A stretch of DNA of 64,000 nt from Adineta vaga (Eukaryota > Animalia > Rotifera). The stretch spans positions 19,840,001 through 19,904,000 of the forward strand of contig CP075492.1 in assembly GCA_021613535.1 (NCBI GenBank), in the 5' to 3' direction. Positions 32,889-61,300 of this stretch are shown piece after piece. How positions within the stretch are numbered: position 1 is the first letter of the stretch; every line of letters begins with the position of its first letter. Below the pieces are notes generated by a model that made no database searches, had not been told where the DNA came from, and saw only the letters and a program-made list of their open reading frames with translations. The position numbers and the translations under genes are program-made.

Positions 32889-35800
32889 TTATCTTTGTGA
32901 CTTACGTGCAGGAAGACCTTTCCATTGTGTGTTTGGTAGCAATAGATCATTTTTCATTACAAGTGTAAAAGGATAAAGTCGGTTGTTACCCATTAATTTA
33001 CAACCTGACATTACAACTGAGCCACTCATAAGAACACAGGCGTTGCCTATGGTAACAGGAACTAGTTTCAGAATACGTTGTTCGAAAGTGTGACACTGAA
33101 ATAGTTGTATAGAACAATAATATATAGAGAAAAAATGATAAGAAACGCATATATTACCACAATATGAGCATCCATATGAAGCCGAACATCATCTCCAATA
33201 GTCACCAAGTTGTAATCAAAAAGAGACGAAAGACTAGGTAAAATCACATTGTCGCCAATGTTCGCACCATATGCTCGAAATAATCGAATTAGCCATTGCG
33301 TATTGCCAAGCAATGAAGAAATCAAAATTTCGTGATCATCTTGTAGTTTTTCTATTATCTGTTTGATTGTTTGATTGTGTACACATGCTTTCCATCGAAA
33401 GAAACTGCAAACAATTATTGTATGAATGATTGATCCACCAACAAGCCCGCCAAAAAAATAGATACTTATGAGAAGACATTTACTAATATAATGAGAAAAA
33501 CATGTCTTCCAAAATGGAATAGTTTTAATTTGATCTTCTATCGCTTGTCTAAAAGGCATGTGAAATGGCATAGCACGAGCTGGAACGCCAATAAAAACAT
33601 CTCCGTTGTTGCTAATTGTTTCTCGAGTAATACGTGTTAAATTACCAACCATAGTATGAGATGCAAGATTACTACCCGGCAAAATTGAACATCCATTCGC
33701 AATGTTTGTATGAGATCCGAGCGTCATTTGATCTACACGATGGTCGCCTGAAAGCGTCATTTCACTAGGAACTAATAAGACATAACCAAAACTAGTGAAA
33801 CCTGTTTCGATTTTTAATAAATTTGTTGGATAGGACAAGAAGATGTCTATATGACGGAGTTTGACATCATCTTCAACGTGAGCACCTAGCCAACGAAGAA
33901 TAAAAGAATAAATATGATCGTATCCAGTTGGCAGTGACCAAGCATGACGAAAACTAGATACAATTAACTGGCGAAGCCACAGTTTATGTAAATATGACCA
34001 TGATGCCATTGAATATGTCTCACCAGCAATACAAGAACCGACTACAAATTTTAACAGGAAGAGAGTGACAAAACAAGCCATAATTGACCACAAAGTCCAG
34101 CAAAAAGCAATATTAATTGGTAACGGTATTTGTTCAACTGAATAAACTTTGTAAACAGTGATTAAAAATGCTCCATGAATACAAATAAGTGATATGAGCG
34201 CAATAACTTGGTAGATTTTGTGCCATATCGAAAATGATCTATTACTGTTTGTAATGAGAGTGTCGGATGGAACAGCTTCGTGTTCTTCACCATCAATAAT
34301 CGTTCGAGATGCAATAAAGCCAGTGACTGATGACATTGGTTGAACAATAACATTATCTTGTATATCAACTTCACCAGATAAAATCGAACGTGCACTGATT
34401 GAACAGTGGCAACCAATCTTAATTGAATGTAATGCAAAAGTATCATTATCATTGAAATACAAACAATTTAGAGTCGTGTTATCAGCAATATAAGTTTCAT
34501 CACCAATCTGTAACAACCATGGAGCATCAATAGTTACGCTATAAATATGTGCATTGAAACTAACTCGAGCACCACAAAGACATAGATAGCAATTGTACAA
34601 TGATGTACCAACAATATGTTGCAACCAAAACGCATTATTATTCCATAGTCGATTCAAAAACCACCAACGGTAATAGCTGCAAGAGAAAACATTGTCATTC
34701 TTGATGTTTTGTGGAAACAGTAGACGTGAACAGATGACATAGAAAAAAAGATGCAATACTGGCAGGATAGGGAAAAGAAATGGACACCATTGATGAATTA
34801 TCATAATTGGCCATAGCCATTGACAAACAAGAATTACAATACCAACCGATTCTATGACGAAAGAAGGTGCAAGGCGAATATATGAATCACCAGTCTGATT
34901 CTTCGTGGATGCTGTCTTTATTAATGGCTCACAAACCAATAAAGGTTCAACTACTTGAGCCAATTCTCGAATAGATGGATTTGCGAATAAAAGATCGATG
35001 TCTACTTTGTTCGAAACATGCTGTCGAATCAAACTGATTGCATGCATAGCATTCAAAGATGTTCCACCAAGACGACCAAAAGAAATATCAATATGAGGAG
35101 ACTCAACATGAAAAGCTTGACTAAAAATACATTGCAGTTGCTGCTCTAGTGCAGTGCGCGGCAAAACGCCGTCATGATTATTATGTGACGATAAAAAGTT
35201 AGGTGAAGGAAGAACTTTCCGATCTATTTTACCATTTGAATTCAATGGTAGTTTGTCAAGTATCATGAATATTGATGGAATCATGTGTGATGGTAAATAT
35301 GATTGACAATGTTGACGTAATTGTGTTTCATTCATATTATCAGAACTTTGAACATAAGCAACTAAATGATCATCACCCCATTTCATCACAATACACACAG
35401 AAATAGATGATATGTTAAGTAAACATCGTTCTATTTCACCAAGTTCAATACGTTGTCCATGTAATTTGATTTGATGATCTTTTCTTCCTTGATAATGAAG
35501 AAGACCATTACTATCCCTTTTGACGAGATCACCTGTTCGATAATATATTTCACTATCGATTTCAATAAATGCTTTTGATGTCAAATCATCACGTCCAAGA
35601 TAGCCAGCAAAGACACCAACTCCTCCTACAAACAATTCAGCTTCTTCATTGATCATCACATTTTGCAAGAATTCATCTAGAACTAGAGTTCGATAATTTG
35701 CAAGGGGTGCACCTATGGGAATGCTCTGTATATTGGATGATATGTTGATATCATAGAATGTGCAAGCAATAGTTGCTTCCGCTGGTCCATATAGATTCCA

Positions 35801-38386
35801 TAGAAGACAGTTTTGTAAATTGATGTTTTTGATTGAATCAATCAATTTAATCGTGAAAGGTTCACCTATAAATGAAAAATCAAATGAGTTAAGATGAAGA
35901 AATAACTTCATGTCACATGCTCACCAATACTACAAAGCGATCGAAGATATGCAAAGCCATCAGACATATTACCTTGTTTCACAAAAGCGAAAAAACTCTG
36001 TAATAAACTCGGTACAGCATGCATATATGTGATTTGTTTATTTCGTAAAACTTCATATAAATAATCAAAATCAATTGTTCCTCTTGGATGAAGCATAACC
36101 AATGTGGCACCATGGATTAAAATACCAAGTATTTCTTGAACATGAATATCAAATGAACATCGTGCCATTTGTATAGCTATATCGTATTGATTGAATGAAT
36201 CAATAAAAGTTAAAGAATCGATACATTTAACGAAATTCTCATGTCGAACTTGAGCCTACAAAGAAGAAGATTAAAAACAGTTAAATATTTAAAAAAAAGA
36301 AGGAAACAATTAACAAACCGCTTTTGGTATTCCAGTTGAACCACTTGTAAAGATGATGTAAGCTATGTTATGAGATGTCACTCTTATACTTGATAATTCA
36401 TCAATATCAACATTATTCTCCATATCATTGTTAGTTAATATAGAATCCATATTAACTAAGATAATATTATCATTAAACTTCTCTTTAGTCAATGAATGAA
36501 CAAGAACAAGACGAGATTGAGTTTGTTCTATGAGAGAATATAATCGATGTTGTGGATCTCGTGCTGATAATGGACAATAAACACTACCAATCATTTCAAT
36601 GGCCATTATACCAATAACCTATTCAAGATCAATATTCATTCTCATTCTCATTCTCATTCTCATCAACTACTCACCATTGATATACTTCTCTCGACACATT
36701 GACAAATTATTTCACCTACACAAATATGATATTCATTGAGTAGATTCGAAGATAACAATTGAACATAATACAATAGTTCAGAATATGTCAAAGATTGATC
36801 ATCTAATTCAACAGCTAACTTTTGTGGATATATCTTTGCTTTCGAAGCAAACTCATGATGAATACAATTAGTAGTAGTCGAAGAAGAAGGAAATGATATT
36901 TGTGTTTGATTTAGAGATTGTATTAGAAATTGTTCATTTGGTAACAGTAATGATAACTCATAGATTGATGTCTCTTTTCTAGTAGTATGAATAGATGTCG
37001 ATAAATGATGTAACATTGAATGAAATTGATGTGAAATCTTTTCAATTGTCTTCACATTGAATAAATCAAGAGATGCATTGATTGTGCATGAGAGTTCATT
37101 CATATCTAGATTATGTTGATAACTAACGATAAAATCAAATTTACTCATGATTTCATCTTCACTAATCTTAAGTGACAATGGTACTAAAGAAAGTGGACTA
37201 TCACCAATTCTTATTTCATTATTGTTGTTATATGATATGAATTCAAATGATATGTCGAGAAATGCAGGATGTAATATATTAGGATGTTGATCAAGGATAC
37301 GTTGAAGTGGAAAATATGAATATTTCATACTATTTCTTATCATTTCACTAACATAATCGAGTAGTTGACAAAAAGACCAATGAGAATCTAATTGGCATCG
37401 TAATGGAATAGCATTTACAAACATACCAATCACTGACTTGAGTTCATCTCTATATCGACCATGTGTATTCATTCCAATGCATAGATCATTTTCTCTATTT
37501 GTTAATTTAAATAAGAAGATGTAGTAGATTGCAAGAGATAGATGTTCGATGGAATGATTGTGTGCGGATGCATAGGAAAGAAGATGACGTGAAATATCTT
37601 GACCAAAATCAAAAGAAATGAATGTTCCACGACCTGTTCGATGTTCATTTACAAGACGATATCGATCATATGGTAATGATAAAGATTGATCAAGTTTGCA
37701 ATCATAAAGAGTATCATGCCAAAACAGATTTGCGCCACTCATCGGCATTTGTCGTTCAATAACAGCATCTAGATGAAAAAGAAAGAATCGATGAATTAAG
37801 AAAGAAATAGAGTTTTAGTTACAATCAACATAACGTGGAATAGTATCATCGGTGTTAGATAGTTGACTTGTTGTATATGCTTGATTAAGATCATGAAGAA
37901 ACACATTCATTGATGGAACATCAAAAGTAGCATGATGAAAATTGAAAATAATTACATCTTTGTCAGAGAGAAGATCATTTGAAGAGATGTGTTTGTAGTA
38001 AATAAGATGACATCGAAAGACAAGACCTTGAGCTAGATGAAAAAGTTGAGGATTACGTTTTTCTTCATGTATTATATTAGTGAGTTGTTGATGTGTTTCA
38101 TAAGTGCTTTGAATAAATGTAAATAATGTATTGTTATCATTGTTCGAAGTCATGATTTGTTGCATGAATGAGTTTGTTTCTGTATTAAAGACAAGTGATG
38201 TACGAAGTGATTCATGTTTTGTAAGGATTAGTTGAAGAGCATTGTAGAGTTGTTTAATTGATAGAGTATGTGTTGAGGAGAGACGATAAACAAAAGGCAT
38301 ATTGTAGATTGCTACTTGTGGTTTCTCAGGATCGAAACGAATTCGTTCATCAAGCCAAATACGAGCTTGTGCAAATGATGCTGGTG
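32889..38386 (-). other. NRPS terminal module: C(HHATFDV)-A-T(GGTSL)-Pls-like terminal domain
   Basis: Introns 37769-37822, 36619-36674, 36256-36318, 35866-35924 and 33096-33157. After T come hydrophobic segments alternating with three hexapeptide beta-helix blocks (LCGARV..LQIGDET, WLGAHV..GVPAR, AYGANIG..VTIGDDV..CHTFEQRILK..LVMKND..WKGLPAR). Confidence 0.92.
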
Positions 38387-41300
38387 CTATAACAGTGCAA
38401 CTTTTGTTGAACTTGAACGAAATTCATCCATTAGCACATGTATCCTGAGAGTTTTTCGACTCATATTACAACTCCTCCCTTGAGCTAGCTAAATGGTTCA
38501 CCTAGGTTGCTTTTTTATAGATCAATGTTGTTATGCAGTGAAAAGCAAAAAAGCTTCATATATGAACATGTTCTAGGTTATAACTGTTCAGAAATTTTTG
38601 TCTTTATCAAAAATTGTATACTAAGTTTTGATTTCATTTATTTTCACTATAAACTTATTATATTGGACATTTACAGATTGGTTCTGTTTACACAATTGCT
38701 CGTAAAATTCTCTACAAACAGATTTAGAAATTGTTCATCAAATAATAAAGATGTGAAAGGCTGTATGAAAAATGTTGAGAAACTTTAAAGTCTTCGTTGT
38801 TCAAAAAATTTCATGTTGAAATGATTTCTTATGATGTAAAAGTTAAACAGAAAAGTATTCAAGTTTAACTATAGAAGAATCGGAACTACAAGCAGAAGAT
38901 AACATTTTTCACGCACGACGAAATGATCACTAATCGACTGTCTTGTCCTATACTTTCCAGTTTCTTATTTTTTCCTTACTCTAAGGCAAGAGTCTTTTCG
39001 ACTGAAAAGTAAAAACAATCTTCATTGGAGTTCAGGATGACACGAACTTCGTCTAATCAATCAGAAATAAAAGAATCAGAGGAGAATTGTAAGATATTCA
39101 AAATATACTTTAAGTTCAGAAAAGAGTCTTTTTCTTTTCTTTCAAAAAAAAGTTTACTTGATAATTATGAAAAGCCAGAAGCTGGAAAAAATATAAGATA
39201 TATGGAACTTCTTAGTGTTCAGACAAGATTCTCGTCATAGGAAAGAAAACGATTCTTGTCAGTTTTCCAAGATAAACAGCACGTAATTTTGCCATTGTGT
39301 AATTATATATATAAAGGAGTACTTGAATATTGTTTATTGATTACTAATATGATAGTTAGTATAATGTCGCTTTGAATTTGTGCTTTTCCTAAAATGTTCA
39401 TCTCGTTCACACGACATTTGACAACTCTTTATTTCAGCTCGATGCAGAGGAAATAACTGAAGATATAATAGCCATCTTTTTCCGAAAAACTACACTTTTA
39501 TTGAACACATTTCAGTATTCTACTAATCAATATCTTTCTATTTATTCTAGTTTTTTAGATTTTTTTCATCAACTGCAAAAGTCTTCTATGGACAGACGAA
39601 GGATACTTCGATGATTTGTTCAAAAAATTATTGTTTGACAATGCTCTTACAAGAGAACTTTCCCAGATACCCATTCGCTTTTGAATCGGGACTTAGCGCA
39701 TCTCATAGATTTTAATGAGTTATGCTTACCATAAAAAAGTTCGTGCCACTAGCTTGTCCCTGAGGAGATCGAACGTTTTCACTATCACTGCCGTAAGGAT
39801 AATTCGATCAGAGAAAATCACTAACTCAATCAATATGAATTGAAATGAGTTGAGACTTTACACACGTATAATCATATTTTCGTGGCAGATGACATGAAGT
39901 TTGAATTCAAGTTAACTTAACAAGACCAACTATTGCAGATATTAGCGTGATTTTAATCTCATTGGTTTTATTACTACTTAAAATAGCAAGACAAATAAAG
40001 GAAATTGTTAGAATAGTGAACATAAATATCACAAGACAAATTCGGATGCTGTAGAGTTGTAGATTTTCTCGTACCTTGATGTTTGCATCGAAACTTATAT
40101 TATAAATTAAATATTCAGAGATTTCGTTCGTGTACAAAATCATAACATCTGATGAATAATAAATAATGAATCGAGCATGCGCATTCAGTTGAATTTTTAT
40201 TACGTGAACAAAAAGATAATAGTGTGCACTCTTATACGAAAACGATTTCAATTGCATCTAACCAAAATGACAGATGCATCGGTTATATCTTCTTTTCTCT
40301 TTGTAAGATTTTCTCAATCTGTTATATCCACGAACTCCAATGTTTCGAATGTATCAATTTATGAACAAGAAATTGCTAATCATCGTCCTGGGGTGTTGAA
40401 TTCGATTATCCACCACCATTTATTTTGTATAGAAAGTGAAAGTTCACTTGATCTTATCTCAAATGAAATATTGGAAGAAGACATTGACCAGTATGCTGAT
40501 GATGATAATGTTAAATTGGATTTAGATTTTACTGACACTGACAACGATGCATATGGTGCTTCTCTGCAAAACTTTTCTCCTGATTACATAAAAAAGTCAC
40601 AGGCTATGGCGATGCGAAGGATCCGGGGACGCAAAAAGCGTCTTCGATCGTGGAAGTATGTAAAACGTTGATTTCGACGTGTTTATACATGTGTAAAGTC
40701 TTAATTCATTTAGGTAATATATACATGTACTGAATACCTTGTTGACTCACATATCATCCATTTTTAGAGTTACGATTACGTGCACGTAAACAAGACCAAC
40801 TCTAGCGCATCGAAACGAAAATTTCGTGTTTTTTTATTATGTGTCTAAAATTGTTAAGCTGCAATAGGTACATGTGAAATTAAGCATAATTATCTTGTTT
40901 CTTTTACAATTTTTTCAAACTTTGCTCCGAAAATTCATAATAAAATACGACGAAAAAGGTGCTAATAATAGCTTATAAAAAGCTTTATCAATCTAGCGCA
41001 AATCAGGTAAGACAACAACAAATAAGATTGAGACAAGAAACCAAGATTTGGTATACATGAATCTTGTCAGACAGACAAAGTCAGTTTTTTTAGGCAAGAA
41101 TCTCTTATAGAAGGAATGGAAGAAGAATCTTGTTTGAAATCGAGGAAAACAAGAATTTGAAAAGAAAAGGACAAGACGACCGATTAGTGTATAGTTAGAG
41201 CACCTGTCATAGTCTATGCGTGAGAGAAACAGACTGAAAATGAATACAAATTCCTACTTATATACGCTTCAACACTGTTTTTATATCATGCTTCACAAAA

Positions 41301-44300
41301 CGATATTCATACATTTTTCTCTCATATAACATATGTAATAAATATAAAAAAGATATACCTTCGTATGTGATATTTGGTTGACGACAAAGAACTATCTGGT
41401 GCAATTCATTTACTTCATCCGGCAAAATAAGACTAAGTTTGGTCACAGGTGAAATAATTAAATCAGTCTGATTGACATCGAAATCCATTGAAAAAAGTTG
41501 TTCGAAAAAATATTGAAATCTTTGACCAATTTTTGCAATTGTCGTATCTTCAAATAGATCACGTGAACAAATAAGATGACATGATAATATATTATCATCC
41601 GATGTTGAATTATAAACAAATCTCAACAAGAAGTCAAATTTAGCGGCTTCAAATAATTTTTCTAATAGCACTGGTTTTAAACTGACATCATCAAAAGAGA
41701 ACTGATTGATACTTGAGAATATAGTCATAAGATCAAAAGATATTTGAAGAAAAGGAACTGTTGATTGATTAAGATGCAAATCAGTAAGAATATTTTGTAA
41801 TGGATAATGAGAATGTTCAAGTATTGATAAACATTTTTCTCGTACATGTTTCACAAGTTCATTAAATGACCAATGTGTATTAAGTTGAATACGATATGGT
41901 AATGTTGACACAAACATTCCCATCATATTTTGTAATTCAGTTCTGTATCGATTAGCATTAAGACAAGTGACACATAAATCATTTTGATCATGAGTTAATT
42001 TGAACAAAAAAGAATAAAATATAGCTAGACCTAATTGAAATGGTGTTACATCATGTATAGAAGCATAATCAAGAAATGAAGTCGAAATCTGTCTATCGAA
42101 AGAAATTTGAGCGGTAGAAGCAAAACCAGATCGTTGATCATTAGATGTATAATGTTGATCAACTGGTAATGATAATCGATGTTCCAAATTATATCCTTCA
42201 AATTGCAAATACCAAAATTCATGTGATGATGTCATATCTATATTACGTTCGTGGACTGTATAATCAATATATTGTAATGATTCTTCATCTTCAATCATTA
42301 TCGTATTGCTGTTATATGCGACACATAAATCATTAAAAAAAATTTGACGAGAAGATCGATCAGTTGCTGCATGATGAAATGCTAATAAAAGAATATCAGA
42401 GCCTGTGATAAATTCATTGCTATCCACTTCTTTATTCGACATCATTTGCTGTCGAAGTATTTGACAATGAAAAACACGACCAATTGATAAATCAAATAGA
42501 GAAGGATTAATAGTTATTTCATTAATAATATCGTGAAGTTCATTTTCATCTTTGAATTTTACAACGGTATTCATTATGAATGCTTGATGATTTTCCATAA
42601 TCTCTTGTTTTAGAGTGCCATTATCGTTATTAAAATTAACCGATGTACGTAATATTTTATGTTTATATAAAACATATCGAAGAGCTTGTAATAGACGACT
42701 AATCAACATCGATCCTTCAACTACCCGCAGAACAGACAGCTCATTGTAGATACCAATTTTACGAGAAAAACGCACTTGTTCATCAAGAAAAATACGTTCT
42801 TGAGCGAAAGATGCAATACCTTGAAATTTAAAAATAATTATTACAACTTTTTTCGAATATTAAACTTATAGATTCCTAACCTCGATCAATATGTAATGTA
42901 CGCCATTCTGCTGATTTCATTTGGTGAATTGAAACAGATTGAAGTAATTGTGAATGCTGAACAATTGTTGGTTGTAGAAGAAACAGCCCAATGGAAAGCT
43001 TACGAGTGTCAAAACCGAATGATGATTGATAACGATGATAAAGTTCAATAAACAAAAGTGAATGACCACCAATACTAAAAAAACTGACAACCGTCGAAAC
43101 TTGTTTTTCTTTGTATCCAAGAACCTGACGCCAAATATCACATATACGTTCCTCTACTTCATTTTGCGGTACATTAAGTTCCTTTGAGGTCGACATAGTC
43201 GATGATCCTAAGTTAGGAGAAGGAAGAACTTTCCGATCTATTTTACCATTTGAATTCAATGGTAGTTTGTCAAGTATCATGAATATTGATGGAATCATGT
43301 GTGATGGTAAATATGATTGACAATGTTGACGTAATTGTGTTTCATTCATATTATCAGAACTTTGAACATAAGCAATTAAATGATCATCACCCCATTTCAT
43401 CACAATACACACAGAAATAGATGATATGTTAAGTAAACATCGTTCTATTTCACCAAGTTCAATACGTTGTCCATGTAATTTGATTTGATGATCTTTTCTT
43501 CCTTGATAATGAAGAAGACCATTACTATCCCTTTTGACGAGATCACCTGTTCGATAATATATTTCACTATCGATTTCAATAAATGCTTTTGATGTCAAAT
43601 CATCACGTCCAAGATAGCCAGCAAAGACACCAACTCCTCCTACAAACAATTCAGCTTCTTCATTGATCATCACATTTTGAAAGAATTCATCTAGAACTAG
43701 AGTTCGATAATTTGCAAGGGGTGCACCTATGGGAATGCTCTGTATATTGGATGATATGTTGATATCATAGAATGTACAGTCAATAGTTGCTTCCGCTGGT
43801 CCATATAGATTCCATAGAAGACAGTTTTGTAAATTGATGTTTCTGATTGAATCGATCAATTTAATCGTGAAAGGTTCACCTATAAATGAAAAATCAAATG
43901 AGTTAAGATGAAGAAATAACTTCATGTTACATGCTCACCACTACTGCAAAGTGATCGAAGATATGCAAAGCCATCAAACATATTACCTTGTTTCACAAAA
44001 GCGAAAAAACTCTGTAATAAACTCGGTACAGCATGCATATATGTGATTTGTTTATTTCGTAAAACTTCATATAAATAATCAAAATCAATTGTTCCTCTTG
44101 GATGAAGCATAACCAATGTGGCACCATGGATTAAAATACCAAGTATTTCTTGAACATGAATATCAAATGAACATCGTGCCATTTGTATAGCTATATCGTA
44201 TTGATTGAATGAATCAATAAAAGTTAAAGAATCGATACATTTAACGAAATTCTCATGTCGAACTTGAGCCTACAAAGAAGAAGAGTAAAAACAGTTAAAT

Positions 44301-46744
44301 ATTTAAAAAAAAGAAGGAAACAATTAACAAACCGCTTTTGGTATTCCAGTTGAACCACTTGTAAAGATGATGTAAGCTATGTTATGAGATGTCACTCTTA
44401 TACTTGATAATTCATCAATATCAACATTATTCTCCATATCATTGTTAGTTAATATAGAATCCATATTAACTAAGATAATATTATCATTAAACTTCTCTTT
44501 AGTCAATGAATGAACAAGAACAAGACGAGATTGAGTTTGTTCTATGAGAGAATATAATCGATGTTGTGGATCTCGTGCTGATAATGGACAATAAACACTA
44601 CCAATCATTTCAATGGCCATTATACCAATAACCTATTCAAGATCAATATTCATTCTCATTCTCATTCTCATTCTCATCAACTACTCACCATTGATATACT
44701 TCTCTCGACACATTGACAAATTATTTCACCTACACAAATATGATATTCATTGAGTAGATTCGAAGATAACAATTGAACATAATACAATAGTTCAGAATAT
44801 GTCAAAGATTGATCATCTAATTCAACAGCTAACTTTTGTGGATATATCTTTGCTTTCGAAGCAAACTCATGATGAATACAATTAGTAGTAGTCGAAGAAG
44901 AAGGAAATGATATTTGTGTTTGATTTAGAGATTGTATTAGAAATTGTTCATTTGGTAACAGTAATGATAACTCATAGATTGATGTCTCTTTTCTAGTAGT
45001 ATGAATAGATGTCGATAAATGATGTAACATTGAATGAAATTGATGTGAAATCTTTTCAATTGTCTTCACATTGAATAAATCAAGAGATGCATTGATTGTG
45101 CATGAGAGTTCATTCATATCTAGATTATGTTGATAACTAACGATAAAATCAAATTTACTCATGATTTCATCTTCACTAATCTTAAGTGACAATGGTACTA
45201 AAGAAAGTGGACTATCACCAATTCTTATTTCATTATTGTTGTTATATGATATGAATTCAAATGATATGTCGAGAAATGCAGGATGTAATATATTAGGATG
45301 TTGATCAAGGATACGTTGAAGTGGAAAATATGAATATTTCATACTATTTCTTATCATTTCACTAACATAATCGAGTAGTTGACAAAAAGACCAATGAGAA
45401 TCTAATTGGCATCGTAATGGAATAGCATTTACAAACATACCAATCACTGACTTGAGTTCATCTCTATATCGACCATGTGTATTCATTCCAATGCATAGAT
45501 CATTTTCTCTATTTGTTAATTTAAATAAGAAGATGTAGTAGATTGCAAGAGATAGATGTTCGATGGAATGATTGTGTGCGGATGCATAGGAAAGAAGATG
45601 ACGTGAAATATCTTGACCAAAATCAAAAGAAATGAATGTTCCACGACCTGTTCGATGTTCATTTACAAGACGATATCGATCATATGGTAATGATAAAGAT
45701 TGATCAAGTTTGCAATCATAAAGAGTATCATGCCAAAACAGATTTGCGCCACTCATCGGCATTTGTCGTTCAATAACAGCATCTAGATGAAAAAGAAAGA
45801 ATCGATGAATTAAGAAAGAAATAGAGTTTTAGTTACAATCAACATAACGTGGAATAGTATCATCGGTGTTAGATAGTTGACTTGTTGTATATGCTTGATT
45901 AAGATCATGAAGAAACACATTCATTGATGGAACATCAAAAGTAGCATGATGAAAATTGAAAATAATTACATCTTTGTCAGAGAGAAGATCATTTGAAGAG
46001 ATGTGTTTGTAGTAAATAAGATGACATCGAAAGACAAGACCTTGAGCTAGATGAAAAAGTTGAGGATTACGTTTTTCTTCATGTATTATATTAGTGAGTT
46101 GTTGATGTGTTTCATAAGTGCTTTGAATAAATGTAAATAATGTATTGTTATCATTGTTCGAAGTCATGATTTGTTGCATGAATGAGTTTGTTTCTGTATT
46201 AAAGACAAGTGATGTACGAAGTGATTCATGTTTTGTAAGGATTAGTTGAAGAGCATTGTAGAGTTGTTTAATTGATAGAGTATGTGTTGAGGAGAGACGA
46301 TAAACAAAAGGCATATTGTAGATTGCTACTTGTGGTTTCTCAGGATCGAAACGAATTCGTTCATCAAGCCAAATACGAGCTTGTGCAAATGATGCCGGTG
46401 CTACAATAAGCAGAATAGAGACGAGAATAACTAATGATAATGTCAATTATCAAATCATGTCTCCTGTTAGTATTGTCATCATTTTTCATGGTATCATCGT
46501 TCTGAGTGTAAAAGTATATTCTTATTAACTGCATAATACTAATCTTCTTTTTCTTGCTTCGTTGCGAAACTGATTGTTACTAGAAAACATCACTTTTGTT
46601 CAAGTATGTCTTTTTTCGCTATCGCAAAACAGCTTCTCTACAGATTGTGAGAAAACTATTCAAAATGAACGATGTATAATATCAATCCTTTCAGACCAGT
46701 AGTATCAAAAATGCTACACATGTTCAGTCATTCGATTTCCAAGA

Positions 46745-46780
<36 letters not shown>

Positions 46781-49700
46781 TGCCTCATCAGGATAATAAA
46801 AACAGTAGAAAATATTTATACTTCTTCTTGTCCAGTCTCTAAGTTAAACAAATAATCATACCTTCATCAGTAATATTGTCTAATCTATGGAAGATTATTG
46901 ATTTCATTTGTTCAGCTTCTTCTGGTAGAATAAGAGAGAGTTTGTTAATCGATGTCTTAGACTCATGCATCGTAGTATCACGAGACTTCGTCTGAAAAAG
47001 TTGTTCGAGGAAATATTGAAATCTTTGAGCAATTTTTGTCACTGTTCTTCTCTCAAAAAGATCATATGAGCAAACAAATGCACATGACAACTCATTAACA
47101 ATCGATGTCGACTTGTTCAAAAAATGCAATGAAAAGTCAAATTTCGCCACTTGATATGATTGTTCTAGTGACACTTTCTCCAAATCTACGCCATTCATAC
47201 ATAACTCATTGACATCTTCTGATTCAGTGATAAAGTCAAACATTGTTTCAAGAAATGAAGCATTTGATTGATTAACATGTAGGTCACTAAGAATATGTTG
47301 AAGTGGATAATGAGAATGTTCAAGTATTGATAAACATTTCTCTTGTACATATGTAACAACTTCATTGAATGACCAATGATGATCAAGTTGAATACGATAT
47401 GGTAATGTTGACACAAACATTCCTATCACATTGATGATTTCACTTCGATATCGATTAGCATTTATACTAGCAATACATATATCATTTTCATGATGAGTTA
47501 ATTTGAATAGAAAGACATAAAATATCGAGAGTCCAAGTTGAAAAAGTGTCAGATGATGTGATGAGGCATAATTTAGAAATGATGTACATATATCATCATC
47601 AAAAGTAATTTCAACAGTAGAAGCTAAGCCTGTTCGTTGATTCGTTGATAAACGAGATCGATCAATTGGTAATAATAATTGATGATCAAGATTATATCCT
47701 TTGAGCTCTGATCGCCAGAAGTGTTGAGATAATGTCATATCCATAATATGTTCATGAATAGAATAATCAACATATTGAAAGGAATGATCATCATCTATAG
47801 GTAATAAATCATCAGTCTGATAGGCAAGAGAAAGATCACGAATAAAGATTAATGTAGATGCACCATCAAAAAATGCATGATGAATAGTAAATAATATTAA
47901 ATCATCTGCATTCAATAAATCATCATCATTGTTAGTTAACAAAGCATCAGATCGATAATGGCGAAGAATATGACAATTAATAACATGTCCTTTCGATAGA
48001 TCAAATAAATCAGATTGATTTAATATTCTTTTCACAATTTCACTCTTTTCACTATTCACTTCTTCAAGATTTATCACAATAAAACTACATGATTTCACAT
48101 TATCAATAAGAACATTTTCATCTAAACAATGTTGTATAATAATACCATTTGTATCAACATCAAGTGATGTTCGAAGAATATTATGTTTTCTTATGACAGA
48201 TTCAAATGCATGTTGTAATCGTGCAATCGATATATGATCATTATTAGATGAAATACTAAAAAGTAATGGAATAACATACATGTTCTGATTATTATTATTG
48301 TTGTTGTTCGTAGATGAAAAACGAATTTGTTCATCTAAGAAAATACGTTCTTGTGCATAGGATGCTTTTGCTATAAACAATAAATTACAAAATATAAAAA
48401 AATATAGTTAGAAAATAAGCACTCTATACCTCTAACGAGATGTAATGAAGACCAATGATAATTATCGATAGTGAGATTAATATGCATTATATGATGAATT
48501 AGTTGAGCATGATTCATGATGGTTGGATGTTGAAATAAATCAGAAATAGAAAGAGAATTTGTTTCTAAATTAAATTCTATTTTATAACGATGAAATAGTT
48601 GCATCATAAGTAATGAATGACCACCAATAGTAAATATATTTGTATTGATTGAGATTTGTTCGTGTTTGAGTATATCACACCAAATATGATGAATAAGAAG
48701 TTCGATTTCATTTGTTGGTTGTGTCAGTTGGATATCATTTGTGAGATGTGTCGATGGTAGATGAGAAAAGTTAGGTGAAGGAAGAAGTTTCCGATCTATT
48801 TTACCATTTGAATTCAATGGTAGTTTGTCAAGTATCATGAATATTGATGGAATCATGTGTGATGGTAAATATGATTGACAATGTTGACGTAATTGTGTTT
48901 CATTCATATTATCAGAACTTTGAACATAAGCAATTAAATGATCATCACCCCATTTCATCACAATACACACAGAAATAGATGATATGTTAAGTAAACATCG
49001 TTCTATTTCACCAAGTTCAATACGTTGTCCATGTAATTTGATTTGATGATCTTTTCTTCCTTGATAATGAAGAAGACCATTACTATCCCTTTTGACGAGA
49101 TCACCTGTTCGATAATATATTTCACTATCGATTTCAATAAATGCTTTTGATGTCAAATCATCACGTCCAAGATAGCCAGCAAAGACACCAACTCCTCCTA
49201 CAAACAATTCAGCTTCTTCATTGATCATCACATTTTGAAAGAATTCATCTAGAACTAGAGTTCGATAATTTGCAAGGGGTGCACCTATGGGAATGCTCTG
49301 TATATTGGATGATATGTTGATATCATAGAATGTGCAAGTAATAGTTGTTTCAGCGGGTCCGTACATGTTGCATAGCCGACAGGTGGCTGTTATAATACTG
49401 GAAATTAAGTTTATGAGTTTTTTAGAAAACGGTTCACCTTGAAAAAATGAAATATTTTGTATAATGAGACTTTTCACATAAAAATCACATACCACCGGTC
49501 AAAATTGCTCGCAGCCATTGTATAGCATCCATTCGATTCGACGATTGTATAAAGTCAAAGAAATTATAAAGTACAGTTGGAACAGTACTGAGAGATGTAA
49601 TACTCTTGTCTTTCATAACTGTAGCAAGATAGTCAAAGTCTAAATTTCCTTTCGGATGGAGCATAACTAATGTGGCACCATTGATTAAAATACCAAGTAT

Positions 49701-52297
49701 TTCTTGAACATGAATATCAAATGAACATCGTGCCATTTGTATAGCTATGTCATATTGATTGAATGAGTTAATATAAATCAAAGAATGTGTACATTTAACG
49801 AAATTCTCATGTCGAACTTGAGCCTACAAAGAAGAAGAGTAAAAACAGTTAAATATTTAAAAAAAAGAAGGAAACAATTAACAAACCGCTTTTGGTATTC
49901 CAGTTGAACCACTTGTAAAGATGATGTAAGCTATGTTATGAGATGTCACTCTTATACTTGATAATTCATCAATATCAACATTATTCTCCATATCATTGTT
50001 AGTTAATATAGAATCCATATTAACTAAGATAATATTATCATTAAACTTCTCTTTAGTCAATGAATGAACAAGAACAAGACGAGATTGAGTTTGTTCTATG
50101 AGAGAATATAATCGATGTTGTGGATCTCGTGCTGATAATGGACAATAAACACTACCAATCATTTCAATGGCCATTATACCAATAACCTATTCAAGATCAA
50201 TATTCATTCTCATTCTCATTCTCATTCTCATCAACTACTCACCATTGATATACTTCTCTCGACACATTGACAAATTATTTCACCTACACAAATATGATAT
50301 TCATTGAGTAGATTCGAAGATAACAATTGAACATAATACAATAGTTCAGAATATGTCAAAGATTGATCATCTAATTCAACAGCTAACTTTTGTGGATATA
50401 TCTTTGCTTTCGAAGCAAACTCATGATGAATACAATTAGTAGTAGTCGAAGAAGAAGGAAATGATATTTGTGTTTGATTTAGAGATTGTATTAGAAATTG
50501 TTCATTTGGTAACAGTAATGATAACTCATAGATTGATGTCTCTTTTCTAGTAGTATGAATAGATGTCGATAAATGATGTAACATTGAATGAAATTGATGT
50601 GAAATCTTTTCAATTGTCTTCACATTGAATAAATCAAGAGATGCATTGATTGTGCATGAGAGTTCATTCATATCTAGATTATGTTGATAACTAACGATAA
50701 AATCAAATTTACTCATGATTTCATCTTCACTAATCTTAAGTGACAATGGTACTAAAGAAAGTGGACTATCACCAATTCTTATTTCATTATTGTTGTTATA
50801 TGATATGAATTCAAATGATATGTCGAGAAATGCAGGATGTAATATATTAGGATGTTGATCAAGGATACGTTGAAGTGGAAAATATGAATATTTCATACTA
50901 TTTCTTATCATTTCACTAACATAATCGAGTAGTTGACAAAAAGACCAATGAGAATCTAATTGGCATCGTAATGGAATAGCATTTACAAACATACCAATCA
51001 CTGACTTGAGTTCATCTCTATATCGACCATGTGTATTCATTCCAATGCATAGATCATTTTCTCTATTTGTTAATTTAAATAAGAAGATGTAGTAGATTGC
51101 AAGAGATAGATGTTCGATGGAATGATTGTGTGCGGATGCATAGGAAAGAAGATGACGTGAAAGATCTTGACCAAAATCAAAAGAAATGAATGTTCCACGA
51201 CCTGTTCGATGTTCATTTACAAGACGATATCGATCATATGGTAATGATAAAGATTGATCAAGTTTGCAATCATAAAGAGTATCATGCCAAAACAGATTTG
51301 CGCCACTCATCGGCATTTGTCGTTCAATAACAGCATCTAGATGAAAAAGAAAGAATCGATGAATTAAGAAAGAAATAGAGTTTTAGTTACAATCAACATA
51401 ACGTGGAATAGTATCATCGGTGTTAGATAGTTGACTTGTTGTATATGCTTGATTAAGATCATGAAGAAACACATTCATTGATGGAACATCAAAAGTAGCA
51501 TGATGAAAATTGAAAATAATTACATCTTTGTCAGAGAGAAGATCATTGAAGAGATGTGTTTGTAGTAAATAAGATGACATCGAAAGACAAGACCTTGAGC
51601 TAGATGAAAAAGTTGAGGATTACGTTTTTCTTCATGTATTATATTAGTGAGTTGTTGATGTGTTTCATAAGTGCTTTGAATAAATGTAAATAATGTATTG
51701 TTATCATTGTTCGAAGTCATGATTTGTTGCATGAATGAGTTTGTTTCTGTATTAAAGACAAGTGATGTACGAAGTGATTCATGTTTTGTAAGGATTAGTT
51801 GAAGAGCATTGTAGAGTTGTTTAATTGATAGAGTATGTGTTGAGGAGAGACGATAAACAAAAGGCATATTGTAGATTGCTACTTGTGGTTTCTCAGGATC
51901 GAAACGAATTCGTTCATCAAGCCAAATACGAGCTTGTGCAAATGATGCCGGTGCTACAATAAGCAGAATAGAGACGAGAATAACTAATGATAATGTCAAT
52001 TATCAAATCATGTCTCCTGTTAGTATTGTCATCATTTTTCATGGTATCATCGTTCTGAGTGTAAAAGTATATTCTTATTAACTGCATAATACTAATCTTC
52101 TTTTTCTTGCTTCGTTGCGAAACTGATTGTTACTAGAAAACATCACTTTTGTTCAAGTATGTCTTTTTTCGCTATCGCAAAACAGCTTCTCTACAGATTG
52201 TGAGAAAACTATTCAAAATGAACGATGTATAATATCAATCCTTTCAGACCAGTAGTATCAAAAATGCTACACATGTTCAGTCATTCGATTTCCAAGA

Positions 52298-52333
<36 letters not shown>

Positions 52334-55300
52334 TGCCTCATCAGGATAATAAAAACAGTAGAAAATATTTATACTTCTTCTTGTCCAGTCTCTAAGTTAA
52401 ACAAATAATCATACCTTCATCAGTAATATTGTCTAATCTATGGAAGATTATTGATTTCATTTGTTCAGCTTCTTCTGGTAGAATAAGAGAGAGTTTGTTA
52501 ATCGATGTCTTAGACTCATGCATCGTAGTATCACGAGACTTCGTCTGAAAAAGTTGTTCGAGGAAATATTGAAATCTTTGAGCAATTTTTGTCACTGTTC
52601 TTCTCTCAAAAAGATCATATGAGCAAACAAATGCACATGACAACTCATTAACAATCGATGTCGACTTGTTCAAAAAATGCAATGAAAAGTCAAATTTCGC
52701 CACTTGATATGATTGTTCTAGTGACACTTTCTCCAAATCTACGCCATTCATACATAACTCATTGACATCTTCTGATTCAGTGATAAAGTCAAACATTGTT
52801 TCAAGAAATGAAGCATTTGATTGATTAACATGTAGGTCACTAAGAATATGTTGAAGTGGATAATGAGAATGTTCAAGTATTGATAAACATTTCTCTTGTA
52901 CATATGTAACAACTTCATTGAATGACCAATGATGATCAAGTTGAATACGATATGGTAATGTTGACACAAACATTCCTATCACATTGATGATTTCACTTCG
53001 ATATCGATTAGCATTTATACTAGCAATACATATATCATTTTCATGATGAGTTAATTTGAATAGAAAGACATAAAATATCGAGAGTCCAAGTTGAAAAAGT
53101 GTCAGATGATGTGATGAGGCATAATTTAGAAATGATGTACATATATCATCATCAAAAGTAATTTCAACAGTAGAAGCTAAGCCTGTTCGTTGATTCGTTG
53201 ATAAACGAGATCGATCAATTGGTAATAATAATTGATGATCAAGATTATATCCTTTGAGCTCTGATCGCCAGAAGTGTTGAGATAATGTCATATCCATAAT
53301 ATGTTCATGAATAGAATAATCAACATATTGAAAGGAATGATCATCATCTATAGGTAATAAATCATCAGTCTGATAGGCAAGAGAAAGATCACGAATAAAG
53401 ATTAATGTAGATGCACCATCAAAAAATGCATGATGAATAGTAAATAATATTAAATCATCTGCATTCAATAAATCATCATCATTGTTAGTTAACAAAGCAT
53501 CAGATCGATAATGGCGAAGAATATGACAATTAATAACATGTCCTTTCGATAGATCAAATAAATCAGATTGATTTAATATTCTTTTCACAATTTCACTCTT
53601 TTCACTATTCACTTCTTCAAGATTTATCACAATAAAACTACATGATTTCACATTATCAATAAGAACATTTTCATCTAAACAATGTTGTATAATAATACCA
53701 TTTGTATCAACATCAAGTGATGTTCGAAGAATATTATGTTTTCTTATGACAGATTCAAATGCATGTTGTAATCGTGCAATCGATATATGATCATTATTAG
53801 ATGAAATACTAAAAAGTAATGGAATAACATACATGTTCTGATTATTATTATTGTTGTTGTTCGTAGATGAAAAACGAATTTGTTCATCTAAGAAAATACG
53901 TTCTTGTGCATAGGATGCTTTTGCTATAAACAATAAATTACAAAATATAAAAAAATATAGTTAGAAAATAAGCACTCTATACCTCTAACGAGATGTAATG
54001 AAGACCAATGATAATTATCGATAGTGAGATTAATATGCATTATATGATGAATTAGTTGAGCATGATTCATGATGGTTGGATGTTGAAATAAATCAGAAAT
54101 AGAAAGAGAATTTGTTTCTAAATTAAATTCTATTTTATAACGATGAAATAGTTGCATCATAAGTAATGAATGACCACCAATAGTAAATATATTTGTATTG
54201 ATTGAGATTTGTTCGTGTTTGAGTATATCACACCAAATATGATGAATAAGAAGTTCGATTTCATTTGTTGGTTGTGTCAGTTGGATATCATTTGTGAGAT
54301 GTGTCGATGGTAGATGAGAAAAGCTAGGTGAAGGAAGAAGTTTCCGATCTATTTTACCATTTGAATTCAATGGTAGTTTGTCAAGTATCATGAATATTGA
54401 TGGAATCATGTGTGATGGTAAATATGATTGACAATGTTGACGTAATTGTGTTTCATTCATATTATCAGAACTTTGAACATAAGCAATTAAATGATCATCA
54501 CCCCATTTCATCACAATACACACAGAAATAGATGATATGTTAAGTAAACATCGTTCTATTTCACCAAGTTCAATACGTTGTCCATGTAATTTGATTTGAT
54601 GATCTTTTCTTCCTTGATAATGAAGAAGACCATTACTATCCCTTTTGACGAGATCACCTGTTCGATAATATATTTCACTATCGATTTCAATAAATGCTTT
54701 TGATGTCAAATCATCACGTCCAAGATAGCCAGCAAAGACACCAACTCCTCCTACAAACAATTCAGCTTCTTCATTGATCATCACATTTTGAAAGAATTCA
54801 TCTAGAACTAGAGTTCGATAATTTGCAAGGGGTGCACCTATGGGAATGCTCTGTATATTGGATGATATGTTGATATCATAGAATGTGCAAGCAATAGTTG
54901 TTTCCGCTGGTCCGTATAGATTCCATAGAAGACAGTTTTGCAAATTGATGTTTTTGATTGAATCAATCAATTTAATCGTGAAAGGTTCACCTATAAATGA
55001 AAAATCAAATGAGTTAAGATGAAGAAATAACTTCATGTTACATGCTCACCAATACTGCAAAGTGATCGAAGATATGCGAAGCCATCAAACATTTTACATT
55101 GTTTCACAAAAGCGAAAAAACTCTGTAATAAACTCGGTACAGCATGCATATATGTGATTTGTTTATTTCGTAAAACTTCATATAAATAATCAAAATCAAT
55201 TGTTCCTCTTGGATGAAGCATAACTAATGTGGCACCATGGATTAAAATACCAAGTATTTCTTGAACATGAATATCAAATGAACATCGTGCCATTTGTATA

Positions 55301-58300
55301 GCTATATCGTATTGATTGAATGAATCAATAAAAGTTAAAGAATCGATACATTTAACGAAATTCTCATGTCGAACTTGAGCCTACAAAGAAGAAGAGTAAA
55401 AACAGTTAAATATTTAAAAAAAAGAAGGAAACAATTAACAAACCGCTTTTGGTATTCCAGTTGAACCACTTGTAAAGATGATGTAAGCTATGTTATGAGA
55501 TGTCACTCTTATACTTGATAATTCATCAATATCAACATTATTCTCCATATCATTGTTAGTTAATATAGAATCCATATTAACTAAGATAATATTATCATTA
55601 AACTTCTCTTTAGTCAATGAATGAACAAGAACAAGACGAGATTGAGTTTGTTCTATGAGAGAATATAATCGATGTTGTGGATCTCGTGCTGATAATGGAC
55701 AATAAACACTACCAATCATTTCAATGGCCATTATACCAATAACCTATTCAAGATCAATATTCATTCTCATTCTCATTCTCATTCTCATTCTCATCAACTA
55801 CTCACCATTGGTATACTTCTCTCGACACATTGACAAATTATTTCACCTACACAGATATGATATTCATTGAGTAGATTCGAAGATAACAATTGAACATAAT
55901 ACAAAAGTTCAGAATATGTCAAAGATTGATCATCTAATTCAACAGCTAACTTTTGTGGATATATCTTTGCTTTCGAAGCAAACTCATGATGAATACAATT
56001 AGTAGTAGTCGAAGAAGAAGGAAATGATATTTGTGTTTGATTTAGAGATTGTATTAGAAATTGTTCATTTGGTAACAGTAATGATAACTCATAGATTGAT
56101 GTCTCTTTTCTAGTAGTATGAATAGATGTCGATAAATGATGTAACATTGAATGAAATTGATGTGAAATCTTTTCAATTGTCTTCACATTGAATAAATCAA
56201 GAGATGCATTGATTGTGCATGAGAGTTCATTCATATCTAGATTATGTTGATAACTAACGATAAAATCAAATTTACTCATGATTTCATCTTCACTAATCTT
56301 AAGTGACAATGGTACTAAAGAAAGTTGACTATCACCAATTCTTATTTCATTATTGTTGTTATATGATATGAATTCAAATGATATGTCGAGAAATGCAGGA
56401 TGTAATATATTAGGATGTTGATCAAGGATACGTTGAAGTGGAAAATATGAATATTTCATACTATTTCTTATCATTTCACTAACATAATCGAGTAGTTGAC
56501 AAAAAGACCAATGAGAATCTAATTGGCATCGTAATGGAATAGCATTTACAAACATACCAATCACTGACTTGAGTTCATCTCTATATCGACCATGTGTATT
56601 CATTCCAATGCATAGATCATTTTCTCTATTTGTTAATTTAAATAAGAAGATGTAGTAGATTGCAAGAGATAGATGTTCGATGGAATGATTGTGTGCGGAT
56701 GCATAGGAAAGAAGATGACGTGAAAGATCTTGACCAAAATCAAAAGAAATGAATGTTCCACGACCTGTTCGATGTTCATTTACAAGACGATATCGATCAT
56801 ATGGTAATGATAAAGATTGATCAAGTTTGCAATCATAAAGAGTATCATGCCAAAACAGATTTGCGCCACTCATCGGCATTTGTCGTTCAATAACAGCATC
56901 TAGATGAAAAAGAAAGAATCGATGAATTAAGAAAGAAATAGAGTTTTAGTTACAATCAACATAACGTGGAATAGTATCATCGGTGTTAGATAGTTGACTT
57001 GTTGTATATGCTTGATTAAGATCATGAAGAAACACATTCATTGATGGAACATCAAAAGTAGCATGATGAAAATTGAAAATAATTACATCTTTGTCAGAGA
57101 GAAGATCATTTGAAGAGATGTGTTTGTAGTAAATAAGATGACATCGAAAGACAAGACCTTGAGCTAGATGAAAAAGTTGAGGATTACGTTTTTCTTCATG
57201 TATTATATTAGTGAGTTGTTGATGTGTTTCATAAGTGCTTTGAATAAATGTAAATAATGTATTGTTATCATTGTTCGAAGTCATGATTTGTTGCATGAAT
57301 GAGTTTGTTTCTGTATTAAAGACAAGTGATGTACGAAGTGATTCATGTTTTGTAAGGATTAGTTGAAGAGCATTGTAGAGTTGTTTAATTGATAGAGTAT
57401 GTGTTGAGGAGAGACGATAAACAAAAGGCATATTGTAGATTGCTACTTGTGGTTTCTCAGGATCGAAACGAATTCGTTCATCAAGCCAAATACGAGCTTG
57501 TGCAAATGATGCCGGTGCTACAATAAGCAGAATAGAGACGAGAATAACTAATGATAATGTCAATTATCAAATCATGTCTCCTGTTAGTATTGTCATCATT
57601 TTTCATGGTATCATCGTTCTGAGTGTAAAAGTATATTCTTATTAACTCCATAGTACTAGTCTTCTTTTTCTTGCTCGGTAACCCCACATCATCCGACAGT
57701 CGAGATTTGTCGGATAGAGCCGTTTATGGCATCAACGACTATTTTATAATTCTAATAGATTTTGTGCGGTCTTTAGGCTGTAACAAACTTTTCAGAGCTG
57801 GAATTTATCAGTATAAACATTCTCCATGAAGATACAACGATGTACACATACAGATGCTTTAACTTTATGCGAAAATATATGATAAACTTTTTATTACTAT
57901 ATTTTTGATATATTTTGCATTTCAGAATAGAAGATTTTTCCTTGAAATAGATATATAGTTTTGATTTAAAGTTTTGCTGATTAAACAATTGTTCCTTATG
58001 AGGTAAGATGTGCTTTATTGCACGTTTTTTCCAGAACTTACGGGTTTAAAAGAAATAAACTGTGAAGATAATCATTTTTTGTGAAAATAATAACAAAAGA
58101 GAATCTCTGACTTTTCATAAATTGCTTTGCAATGTAATTACATATAGCACAAAAATCAATGTTTGATTTAATTTTAGTTTATTCGAAATTTTTATATTCT
58201 TAGGCAGATAAATGTTGAAATTGATCATCTTTCTATATAAAACAAAAACGATAGAAATAGATTACTCCGCCAATATAACTCTCACATAAAAAATTCATAT

Positions 58301-61300
58301 ATTCAACTGTATGTTTCGATACTCAGTAGTATATTCGATCACCATTGGATTTGTAAAACTTTGAATTGTTTCATGGTAAGTAATTTTTATTTGTAGAAAA
58401 TTTTTTCATTCTTTTTCTCGCTTCATTATGAAACTGATTGTTACTAGAAAACATCACCTTTGTTCAAGTATGTCTTTTTCTGCTATCGCAAAACAGCTTC
58501 TCTGCAGATTGTGAGAAAACTATTTAAAATGAACGATGTATAATATCAATCCTTTCAGACCAGTAGTATCAAAAATGCTACACATGTTCAATCATTCCAT
58601 TGCCAAGAAATAATATGTATATATATGAATGAGTTGTAACTTTATTGTACGAGTGATGAAAAAAAATGAAAATGAGTTTAGAAAGAATCTGATGCCTAGA
58701 TATTGTTCTCCGTCATTTTCTAAGTATCATATAAAAATTTCTCCCACTACCAGACGCAAAGGAACCGAGATATTTAAAATCCAAAAGTCCAACGCCTAAG
58801 GACATGGATTTGGGAGGATTAGGATGAGGATGTATGTGTGTGAGGATGAGAATGAGAGTTCAGGAAAGACACATCCATCCTCACGAATACCTTTACTCCC
58901 ATCCTCAAGATGAAAATCGAGAACACATCCTCATCGAGATTATAGAATTTCTGATGAAGTTTCTGGAAAATGACATAAAAAACTCGATTCAACAAAGGTA
59001 CATTTTCGTGATAAAACAGTAGCCTATAGAAGTATTCTAGTTTGTTTACCTCTAAATCATACTCAGCGTAGTCTCAGGAGTCAAATGATATATAACGAGA
59101 CTACCTGTGGCCAAAAGCCTCTCGAAAATCAGTAAAAGAAATCTGAAGCTACATTCCGACGTAAAATGTAAATTTCTTCTAAAATTTACATGCAGTATAG
59201 CTGAAATTGTGACCACTGAAAGAACTTTTTTTTTACTAAGTTGGATGAAAGCTTGAGCGAAATCGGTCAAGCACATCAAAAGCTATTGACGAAACACTAT
59301 CGAAAATCTGGAGCTACAAAGTGAGTGACAGAAGGGGTTTTTCTTCTTCTTAGCGTAAAAACGAAGTTTTTTTTGAGTATTGTAGGCCGCTTCGGTACAG
59401 TTTTATGCTGTATCGTGCAGTAGATTAATTTTTTTCAAAACTAGGTTTCGTGATCTGACAGTGCTGGGTTTCGTCTAGAGCTACATGTGTTTGTAAAAGT
59501 ATTATCTCCATAAACCATCACAAAAAGAAAAGAAAATAAATTTATGAATCGTATGTTTCGATAGCCTGAGAGTTGCTCCACAAAACGTGCTATTTATTTT
59601 CTCTTTTATTTTTCTTTCTTTGCTCGAAAAATCAGTTTCGGCTTGGATGAGTCATCCGAGACTGTTTATTTATTATCCTCCAATACGACCATCTCAACGA
59701 GGGTGCAAGGTAGAGACTTGAAAATTATAACGTACTACGTTAAACGTAGTACGAGCATGAGTTAAGAAGTAAAACAAAACAAAAAAAGTTTAAATCTGTC
59801 AAAAAGAACCGGAGTTATCAGCAAAACACATAAAAAACCCAACCGTACAATAAAGTTGCTACTCATTCATATATATATATACTGCCTCATCAGGATAATA
59901 AAAACAGTAGAAAATATTTATACTTCTTCTTGTCCAGTCTCTAAGTTAAACAAATAATCATACCTTCATCAGTAATATTGTCTAATCTATGGAAGATTAT
60001 TGATTTCATTTGTTCAGCTTCTTCTGGTAGAATAAGAGAGAGTTTGTTAATCGATGTCTTAGACTCATGCATCGTAGTATCACGAGACTTCGTCTGAAAA
60101 AGTTGTTCGAGGAAATATTGAAATCTTTGAGCAATTTTTGTCACTGTTCTTCTCTCAAAAAGATCATATGAGCAAACAAATGCACATGACAACTCATTAA
60201 CAATCGATGTCGACTTGTTCAAAAAATGCAATGAAAAGTCAAATTTCGCCACTTGATATGATTGTTCTAGTGACACTTTCTCCAAATCTACGCCATTCAT
60301 ACATAACTCATTGACATCTTCTGATTCAGTGATAAAGTCAAACATTGTTTCAAGAAATGAAGCATTTGATTGATTAACATGTAGGTCACTAAGAATATGT
60401 TGAAGTGGATAATGAGAATGTTCAAGTATTGATAAACATTTCTCTTGTACATATGTAACAACTTCATTGAATGACCAATGATGATCAAGTTGAATACGAT
60501 ATGGTAATGTTGACACAAACATTCCTATCACATTGATGATTTCACTTCGATATCGATTAGCATTTATACTAGCAATACATATATCATTTTCATGATGAGT
60601 TAATTTGAATAGAAAGACATAAAATATCGAGAGTCCAAGTTGAAAAAGTGTCAGATGATGTGATGAGGCATAATTTAGAAATGATGTACATATATCATCA
60701 TCAAAAGTAATTTCAACAGTAGAAGCTAAGCCTGTTCGTTGATTCGTTGATAAACGAGATCGATCAATTGGTAATAATAATTGATGATCAAGATTATATC
60801 CTTTGAGCTCTGATCGCCAGAAGTGTTGAGATAATGTCATATCCATAATATGTTCATGAATAGAATAATCAACATATTGAAAGGAATGATCATCATCTAT
60901 AGGTAATAAATCATCAGTCTGATAGGCAAGAGAAAGATCACGAATAAAGATTAATGTAGATGCACCATCAAAAAATGCATGATGAATAGTAAATAATATT
61001 AAATCATCTGCATTCAATAAATCATCATCATTGTTAGTTAACAAAGCATCAGATCGATAATGGCGAAGAATATGACAATTAATAACATGTCCTTTCGATA
61101 GATCAAATAAATCAGATTGATTTAATATTCTTTTCACAATTTCACTCTTTTCACTATTCACTTCTTCAAGATTTATCACAATAAAACTACATGATTTCAC
61201 ATTATCAATAAGAACATTTTCATCTAAACAATGTTGTATAATAATACCATTTGTATCAACATCAAGTGATGTTCGAAGAATATTATGTTTTCTTATGACA

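Follow-up and report, generated by a model that had tools for sequence, protein, structure and literature searches.

A diverged pocket-coding island within near-identical modules of a nonribosomal peptide synthetase gene of Adineta vaga

Background

How does one module of a multi-module synthetase come to encode a different substrate pocket when its sister modules are almost the same base for base? The question is raised by a nonribosomal peptide synthetase (NRPS) gene of Adineta vaga, a bdelloid rotifer. It lies on the minus strand, partly in the window analysed here (the whole stretch of 64,000 nucleotides, C3:19,840,001-19,904,000 of the six-contig, 100.8-Mb assembly), in a subtelomeric position about 0.45 Mb short of the chromosome end. 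The gene is the catalogued NRPS cluster 3.8 of the Av20 assembly (Chr3 19853598-19938546; Nowell 2024, PMC11258130, Supplementary Data 9); the coding sequence coordinates in that supplement coincide with the open reading frames (ORFs) of the window. The same table lists the cluster with ~16,259 amino acids, an NRPS_term domain, 2 frameshifts and 1 stop codon. Modules consist of condensation, adenylation and thiolation domains (C-A-T), with a further, second C-type domain behind them. The gene was found to contain eight A domains, five within the window and three at C3:19.909, 19.918 and 19.928 Mb; outside the window it was covered through match tables and a single locus of 3.4 kb. Modules are numbered from the 3' end of the gene, as was done in the original prediction, so that M1 is the last module. 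The module in question is M3.

Mosaic structure of module 3

M3 had been described as a near-exact copy of its sisters, interrupted by a single patch of ~450 bp that was equated with the A4-A5 subdomain. Alignment of the five C-A blocks bore out the near-identity, with divergence almost only in 49339-49789, and a diverged patch is indeed present. However, the divergence forms not one tract but two islands: a core of 321 bp and a relic of 41 bp, with ~90 bp of sister sequence between them; this sister-identical stretch rules out a single 450-bp tract. The patch does encode the pocket, but not the whole subdomain, as the core covers only the part after A4 (code positions 278-331). The features of M3 are:

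48766-51959, minus strand: C-A block of M3 (alignment of five C-A blocks)
49339-49659, minus strand: diverged pocket core, consisting of two exon ends and an intron, with code positions 278, 299, 301, 322, 330 and 331 (alignment; GrsA numbering via a match to 1amu)
49438-49492, minus strand: intron of 55 nt, phase 1, GT..AG, at the same site as in the sisters and other bdelloid A domains, of unrelated sequence
49660-49748, minus strand: A4 region with code positions 235, 236 and 239, sister-identical (0-2 differences in 89 bp; comparison with 128 paralog pairs)
49749-49789, minus strand: small relic island in the helix after A3, 10 differences in 41 bp, holding no code residue (alignment)

On the upstream side, M3 and M4 differed at 0/31 positions in 49820-49790, 10/41 in 49789-49749, 0/66 in 49748-49683 and 1/23 in 49682-49660. 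The core followed with 76/166 in 49659-49494 and 37/97 in 49435-49339, and downstream of it the count returned to 0/203 (49338-49136). The core is 57-58% identical to the sisters (42% different), and because the flanks differ by only ~0.05% over 5.1 kb, the patch cannot be a matter of chance. Base 49339, the last one specific to M3, opens codon 331, which encodes the subdomain's final code residue. The two junctions keep the reading frame, and the splice sites are intact. The intron within the patch had been predicted to share the position of the sister introns while being unrelated to them in sequence, and this is the case (55 nt in M3 versus 59 nt in the sisters).

The M3 pocket is flanked by two spacers of 5.1 kb:

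44236-49338, minus strand: downstream spacer, containing the A C-terminus, T, second C-type domain, a 440-bp intron, C, and the A N-terminus of M2 (comparison with 49790-54891)
49790-54891, minus strand: upstream spacer, a near-exact copy of 44236-49338 (alignment)

These are 2 substitutions and one 1-bp frameshifting deletion apart, the 440-bp intron included. The deletion, near 51546-51548 (in a run of three A that is complete in the other copies), puts the C domain that feeds M3 out of frame. If it is real, this allele would not translate M3 within a full-length protein; according to the published supplement, frameshift and stop defects in the cluster table may be assembly errors (PMC11258130).

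In trees of the core, M3 stands on a long branch apart from its sisters, whereas trees of both flanks place it among them. The disagreement identifies a mosaic A domain with breakpoints inside the A-core. For the diverged pocket stretch, the original prediction was right that the specificity code is changed and that recombination is involved.

Specificity codes

Codes were read from motif anchors, with positions 322, 330 and 331 anchored by a match to GrsA 1amu residues 319-398; the other positions were assigned by GrsA numbering. The two exon pieces were set side by side for reading codes, counting changes, building trees and scanning fetched proteins. The sister modules in the window read as follows:

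35194-38392, minus strand: C-A block of M1, the last module, code DIQHCILIAK (alignment, code reading)
43779-44105 (approximate), minus strand: pocket core of M2, code DIQHCSLIDK (Ser-like), differing from M1, M4 and M5 at codons 301 and 331 (code reading, trees)
54892-55216, minus strand: pocket core of M4, code DIQHCILIAK (alignment, code reading)
61868-64000, minus strand: A block of M5, continuing past the window end, code DIQHCILIAK (alignment, code reading)

The translations quoted earlier were correct on re-reading, and the codes DIQSLGMITK for M3 and DIQHCILIAK for M1, M4 and M5 were confirmed. The sister codes are not uniform, however, as DIQHCSLIDK is the reading for M2 and for the sister at C3:19.928 Mb. 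Code residues 235, 236 and 239 lie outside the M3 core and are common to M3 and its sisters.

Compared with the Gly code DILQIGLIWK (PMC11566119), the M3 code has 5/10 matches, and 7/10 with the M-variant of the Gly code used in the original prediction. A firm Gly assignment was dropped, since the match is partial and Q278 and W331 of the Gly codes are absent in M3. The presence of G301 and the loss of H278 suggest a substrate other than Ser; as a guess, it may be small and Gly/Ala-like.

The S301/D331 code of the sisters matches the Ser code DVWHLSLIDK (PMC11566119) at 7/10 positions. Near-identical sisters alternate two coupled code residues, being either S301/D331 (AGT and GAC) or I301/A331 (ATT and GCT), and the coupling of codons 301 and 331 is kept while the intervening sites are shuffled; the switch is seen in M2 at 43779-43945 and in the module at C3:19.928 Mb. 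The S/I alternation at 301 recurs within several separate clades and predominates in ~120 metagenomic homologues. Two loci of A. steineri isolates (allelic or paralogous) are identical for >2.2 kb up to the pocket and then diverge, with codes ending in D versus G at 331.

Donor search and age of the pocket

The patch had been attributed to gene conversion from a paralogous NRPS locus, a claim that was not borne out: a DNA search with the core across the 100.8-Mb haploid assembly matched only the core itself. At the protein level the M3 pocket matched 90 other places in the genome, the best of them only 58% identical in amino acids, and none qualified as a donor. Neither search of the haploid assembly gave a minor parent that resembles the patch more closely than the sisters do. 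Distances from the core to the 20 other A domains compared, the sisters included, are all similar (48-61% DNA identity). The proportion of synonymous differences (pS) in these comparisons was 0.66-0.83, so that synonymous sites are saturated, and that of nonsynonymous differences (pN) 0.32-0.43.

The nearest public relative of the pocket is found in A. steineri (CAF4042098/CAF3968487; 56% amino acid identity in the core, code DVQTCGMIDK). As the nearest relative is this distant, the M3 pocket lineage is old. Database searches were made exon by exon; the codes and the 56% core identity of public proteins come from the scan with a joined-exon model. A query with a 60-residue region gave no match, and searches for an orthologous multi-module gene found only fragments or other family members.

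Conversion among sister modules

In 128 paralog pairs with comparable core divergence, the A4 stretch carried at least 7 differences (median 16). M3 has 0/66 against this expectation of at least 7, which shows that sister sequence was converted into M3. Among the five sister-type modules, 21 of the 35 variable sites in 2,250 nt fall within the 328-nt core (binomial p=8e-10, with sites that are not independent). The patterns of these variable sites are mutually incompatible, as short conversion tracts would yield. In the flank trees the modules of one cluster group together against those of other clusters, and the flanks are 97-100% identical within the gene versus 74-81% outside it.

Recurrence at other clusters and in other animals

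The module at C3:19.918 Mb, in the same gene, combines flanks 97-100% identical to those of M3 with a pocket that is only 31% like that of M3. Its pocket is the second unique island of the gene, ~650 bp in length (C3:19,918,469-19,919,116). The same pattern was found at three other clusters of the genome. At C1:17.975 versus 17.991 Mb, >1 kb of identical flank lies on each side of an island of 700 bp, likewise with a dip at A4; the three pockets at C3:0.251, 0.280 and 0.327 Mb, all diverged from one another, sit on largely identical flanks; and C3:1.580 versus 1.588 Mb is similar with shorter flanks. No island observed is narrower than that of M3, which appears eroded as far as codon 331. In the sample of 24 A domains, no two pockets from different clusters were nearly identical, the closest pair having ~21/166 differences.

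The direction of change was addressed in a four-way test that compared two copies of an NRPS gene. They lie on long contigs in ENA ERZ26165376, which common intron positions mark as presumably bdelloid. Pockets of same-position modules showed 0-3 differences per 100 nt between the copies, and those of different modules 26-48. The flanks of same-position modules were up to 29 per 100 apart, with tracts grouping by copy or across positions. A similar trend was seen in ERZ25073694, on a noisier contig. The pattern is not universal, as a two-module gene of A. steineri is not homogenised across its C domains.

Origin of the mosaic

We consider it probable that intragenic conversion or unequal exchange homogenises the scaffolds, while selection and heterology spare the old pockets. 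Through conversion within the gene, or through paired unequal exchange, the tandem C-A-T-C* modules (C* being the second C-type domain) would keep copying over each other, which would render scaffolds and introns identical. Tracts that replace code residues would alter the peptide and be removed by selection, and a diverged pocket would form a block of heterology where tracts tend to halt. The M3 core would then be what erosion has left of an old A domain that had a specificity of its own. Sequence of the sister type would have advanced from the 3' side up to codon 331 and have overwritten A4, where the code residues are common. The donor expected of a swap was not found for M3 in the haploid assembly, whereas two marks of concerted evolution, grouping by cluster and mosaic sharing of variants, were.

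Several points weigh against this account. Searches gave no orthologous copy of the gene, and the evidence on the direction of change comes by proxy from another animal. The 5.1-kb spacers resemble each other so closely that they require either a very recent duplication or a single long tract, and they would also fit a fresh tandem copy that then gained a pocket. The donor search covered the haploid assembly only, and at the 3' end the boundary falls within the conserved A5 motif, a breakpoint site expected under import too. Finally, the frameshift upstream of M3 in the assembly, if real, weakens present-day selection.

Import would mean that a recent tandem duplicate of a sister module gained its pocket by gene conversion from another NRPS A domain, the donor being lost, on the other haplotype or from another individual, and that sister conversion later replaced the A4 stretch. 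We regard this as unlikely, if a serious alternative. It would account for the near-exact spacer copies on both sides of the pocket and for the sharp boundaries, the 3' one within motif A5, and bacteria provide documented cases of it (PMC8097286; PMC9205934, the latter with an identified donor). Pockets at two positions of some clusters had identical match scores, so that pockets can probably be copied within a gene. Yet the assembly holds no donor, the A domains sampled include no near-identical pocket pair across clusters, and each of the islands at four clusters would require its own vanished donor. Moreover, pockets were the stable part in the four-way test, and the two-island shape demands a second event.

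It is likewise doubtful that bdelloid NRPS genes form a cassette system, in which uniform scaffolds would serve as homology arms and DNA repair would move pockets between modules, haplotypes or individuals, with M3 as a recent product. If true, such a system would provide an asexual animal with fast heritable variation in its defensive peptides.

An assembly artefact, in which collapsed or polished repeats equalised the flanks or joined the pocket to the wrong flanks, seems very improbable. The published annotation of the cluster does contain 2 frameshifts and 1 stop, and polishing can erase small differences between near-identical repeats, but it cannot make paralogous flanks of 75% identity identical. 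The sisters retain distinct single-nucleotide polymorphisms and indels, the pocket occurs nowhere else in the assembly, the junctions are in frame with intact splice sites, and independent assemblies of other animals show the same pattern. Rapid local change through point mutations, driven by diversifying selection since a recent duplication, would fit the concentration of sister substitutions in the core, where they strike code residues, but it is in substance ruled out by the synonymous and intron divergence, as protein-level selection cannot produce a pS of ~0.7, a pN of ~0.35 and an unrelated intron beside flanks differing by ~0.05%.

Relation to known systems

The underlying mechanisms are already known from bacterial NRPS. 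Concerted evolution has been described for bacterial NRPS and polyketide synthase (PKS) genes, in which domains group by cluster and diverged functions are protected (Medema et al. 2014, PMC4256081). The A. vaga gene resembles these in that grouping by cluster prevails over grouping by position, internal recombination homogenises the modules and diverged parts are probably protected. It differs in being an animal gene with introns, which are homogenised too, and in having a 321-bp island, lying inside a single A domain, whose end coincides with the last code codon.

Natural swaps of A-core subdomains with identified donors have also been reported (Baunach et al. 2021, PMC8097286; wollamide wolG1A2, Booth et al. 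2022, PMC9205934). As in these swaps, M3 has a mosaic A domain with breakpoints in the A-core, the C-A linker and the A-sub/T interface are kept, and the pocket is changed. In those studies a minor parent and an orthologous comparison were available, whereas for M3 no donor was found in the assembly and A4 is of the sister type, and the proxy test suggests movement of the flanks, not of the pockets. Like GRINS (PMC8256042), the gene contains long near-identical repeats within an assembly-line gene, a feature linked to gene conversion. GRINS, known from bacterial PKS, are marked by intense GC and TA skews; the skews of the A. vaga repeats, taken in bulk, are small (GC 0.08, AT 0.03).

For these rotifer genes, Nowell et al. 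(2024, PMC11258130) propose duplication and recombination in general terms; the term 'gene conversion' was not found in the text and supplements searched, and no analysis at the level of modules was noticed. A literature search found no description of the pattern in a bdelloid NRPS or in any other animal (intron-bearing) NRPS.

The locus offers a base-resolution view of the way in which a multi-module synthetase of horizontal origin is kept up in an animal, with scaffold and introns homogenised and specificity held in a small, old island. M3 and M4 constitute a natural experiment, their A domains being the same outside ~150 residues, and M2 and M4 differ at two code residues. The contrasts between M2, M3 and M4 allow a direct test of the bdelloid code and of the smallest unit that sets specificity, a matter of relevance to NRPS engineering. 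They also open a testable route to variation in the defensive chemistry of a largely asexual lineage.

Other features of the gene and the window

The 3' end of the gene is formed by one large ORF:

33068-35911, minus strand: A C-terminus, T and a terminal domain that is Pls/PosA-like (matched part 100% identical to A. vaga I4U23_017075)

The terminal domain resembles TIGR02353 (Pls/PosA-like) with an E value of 6e-30, under the curated cut-off. It closes the gene where a thioesterase might stand, and many A. steineri homologues add a methyltransferase domain. A separate locus of the genome matches A. vaga UJR12976.1 at 98-100%.

The second C-type domain after T lies at 46839-48380, 52392-53933, 59941-61482 and 41258-42823. 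It carries the motif HHAFFDG (HHAATDR in module 2) and may serve in epimerisation, be inactive or have a dual role; an intron comes next, then a C domain with HHATFDV. Between modules 5 and 4, the intron (57540-59860) carries two additional stretches, of 747 and 1238 bp, compared with the 440-bp version.

Elsewhere in the window, fragments of a hAT transposase are present at 1009-3490 (minus strand), and a LINE-like element with ORF1 and an endonuclease-reverse transcriptase ORF2 at 4590-9250 (plus strand). A single-ORF, NmrA-like gene at 18699-19643 (plus strand) lies in a stretch of higher G + C content (0.42) and was possibly acquired horizontally.

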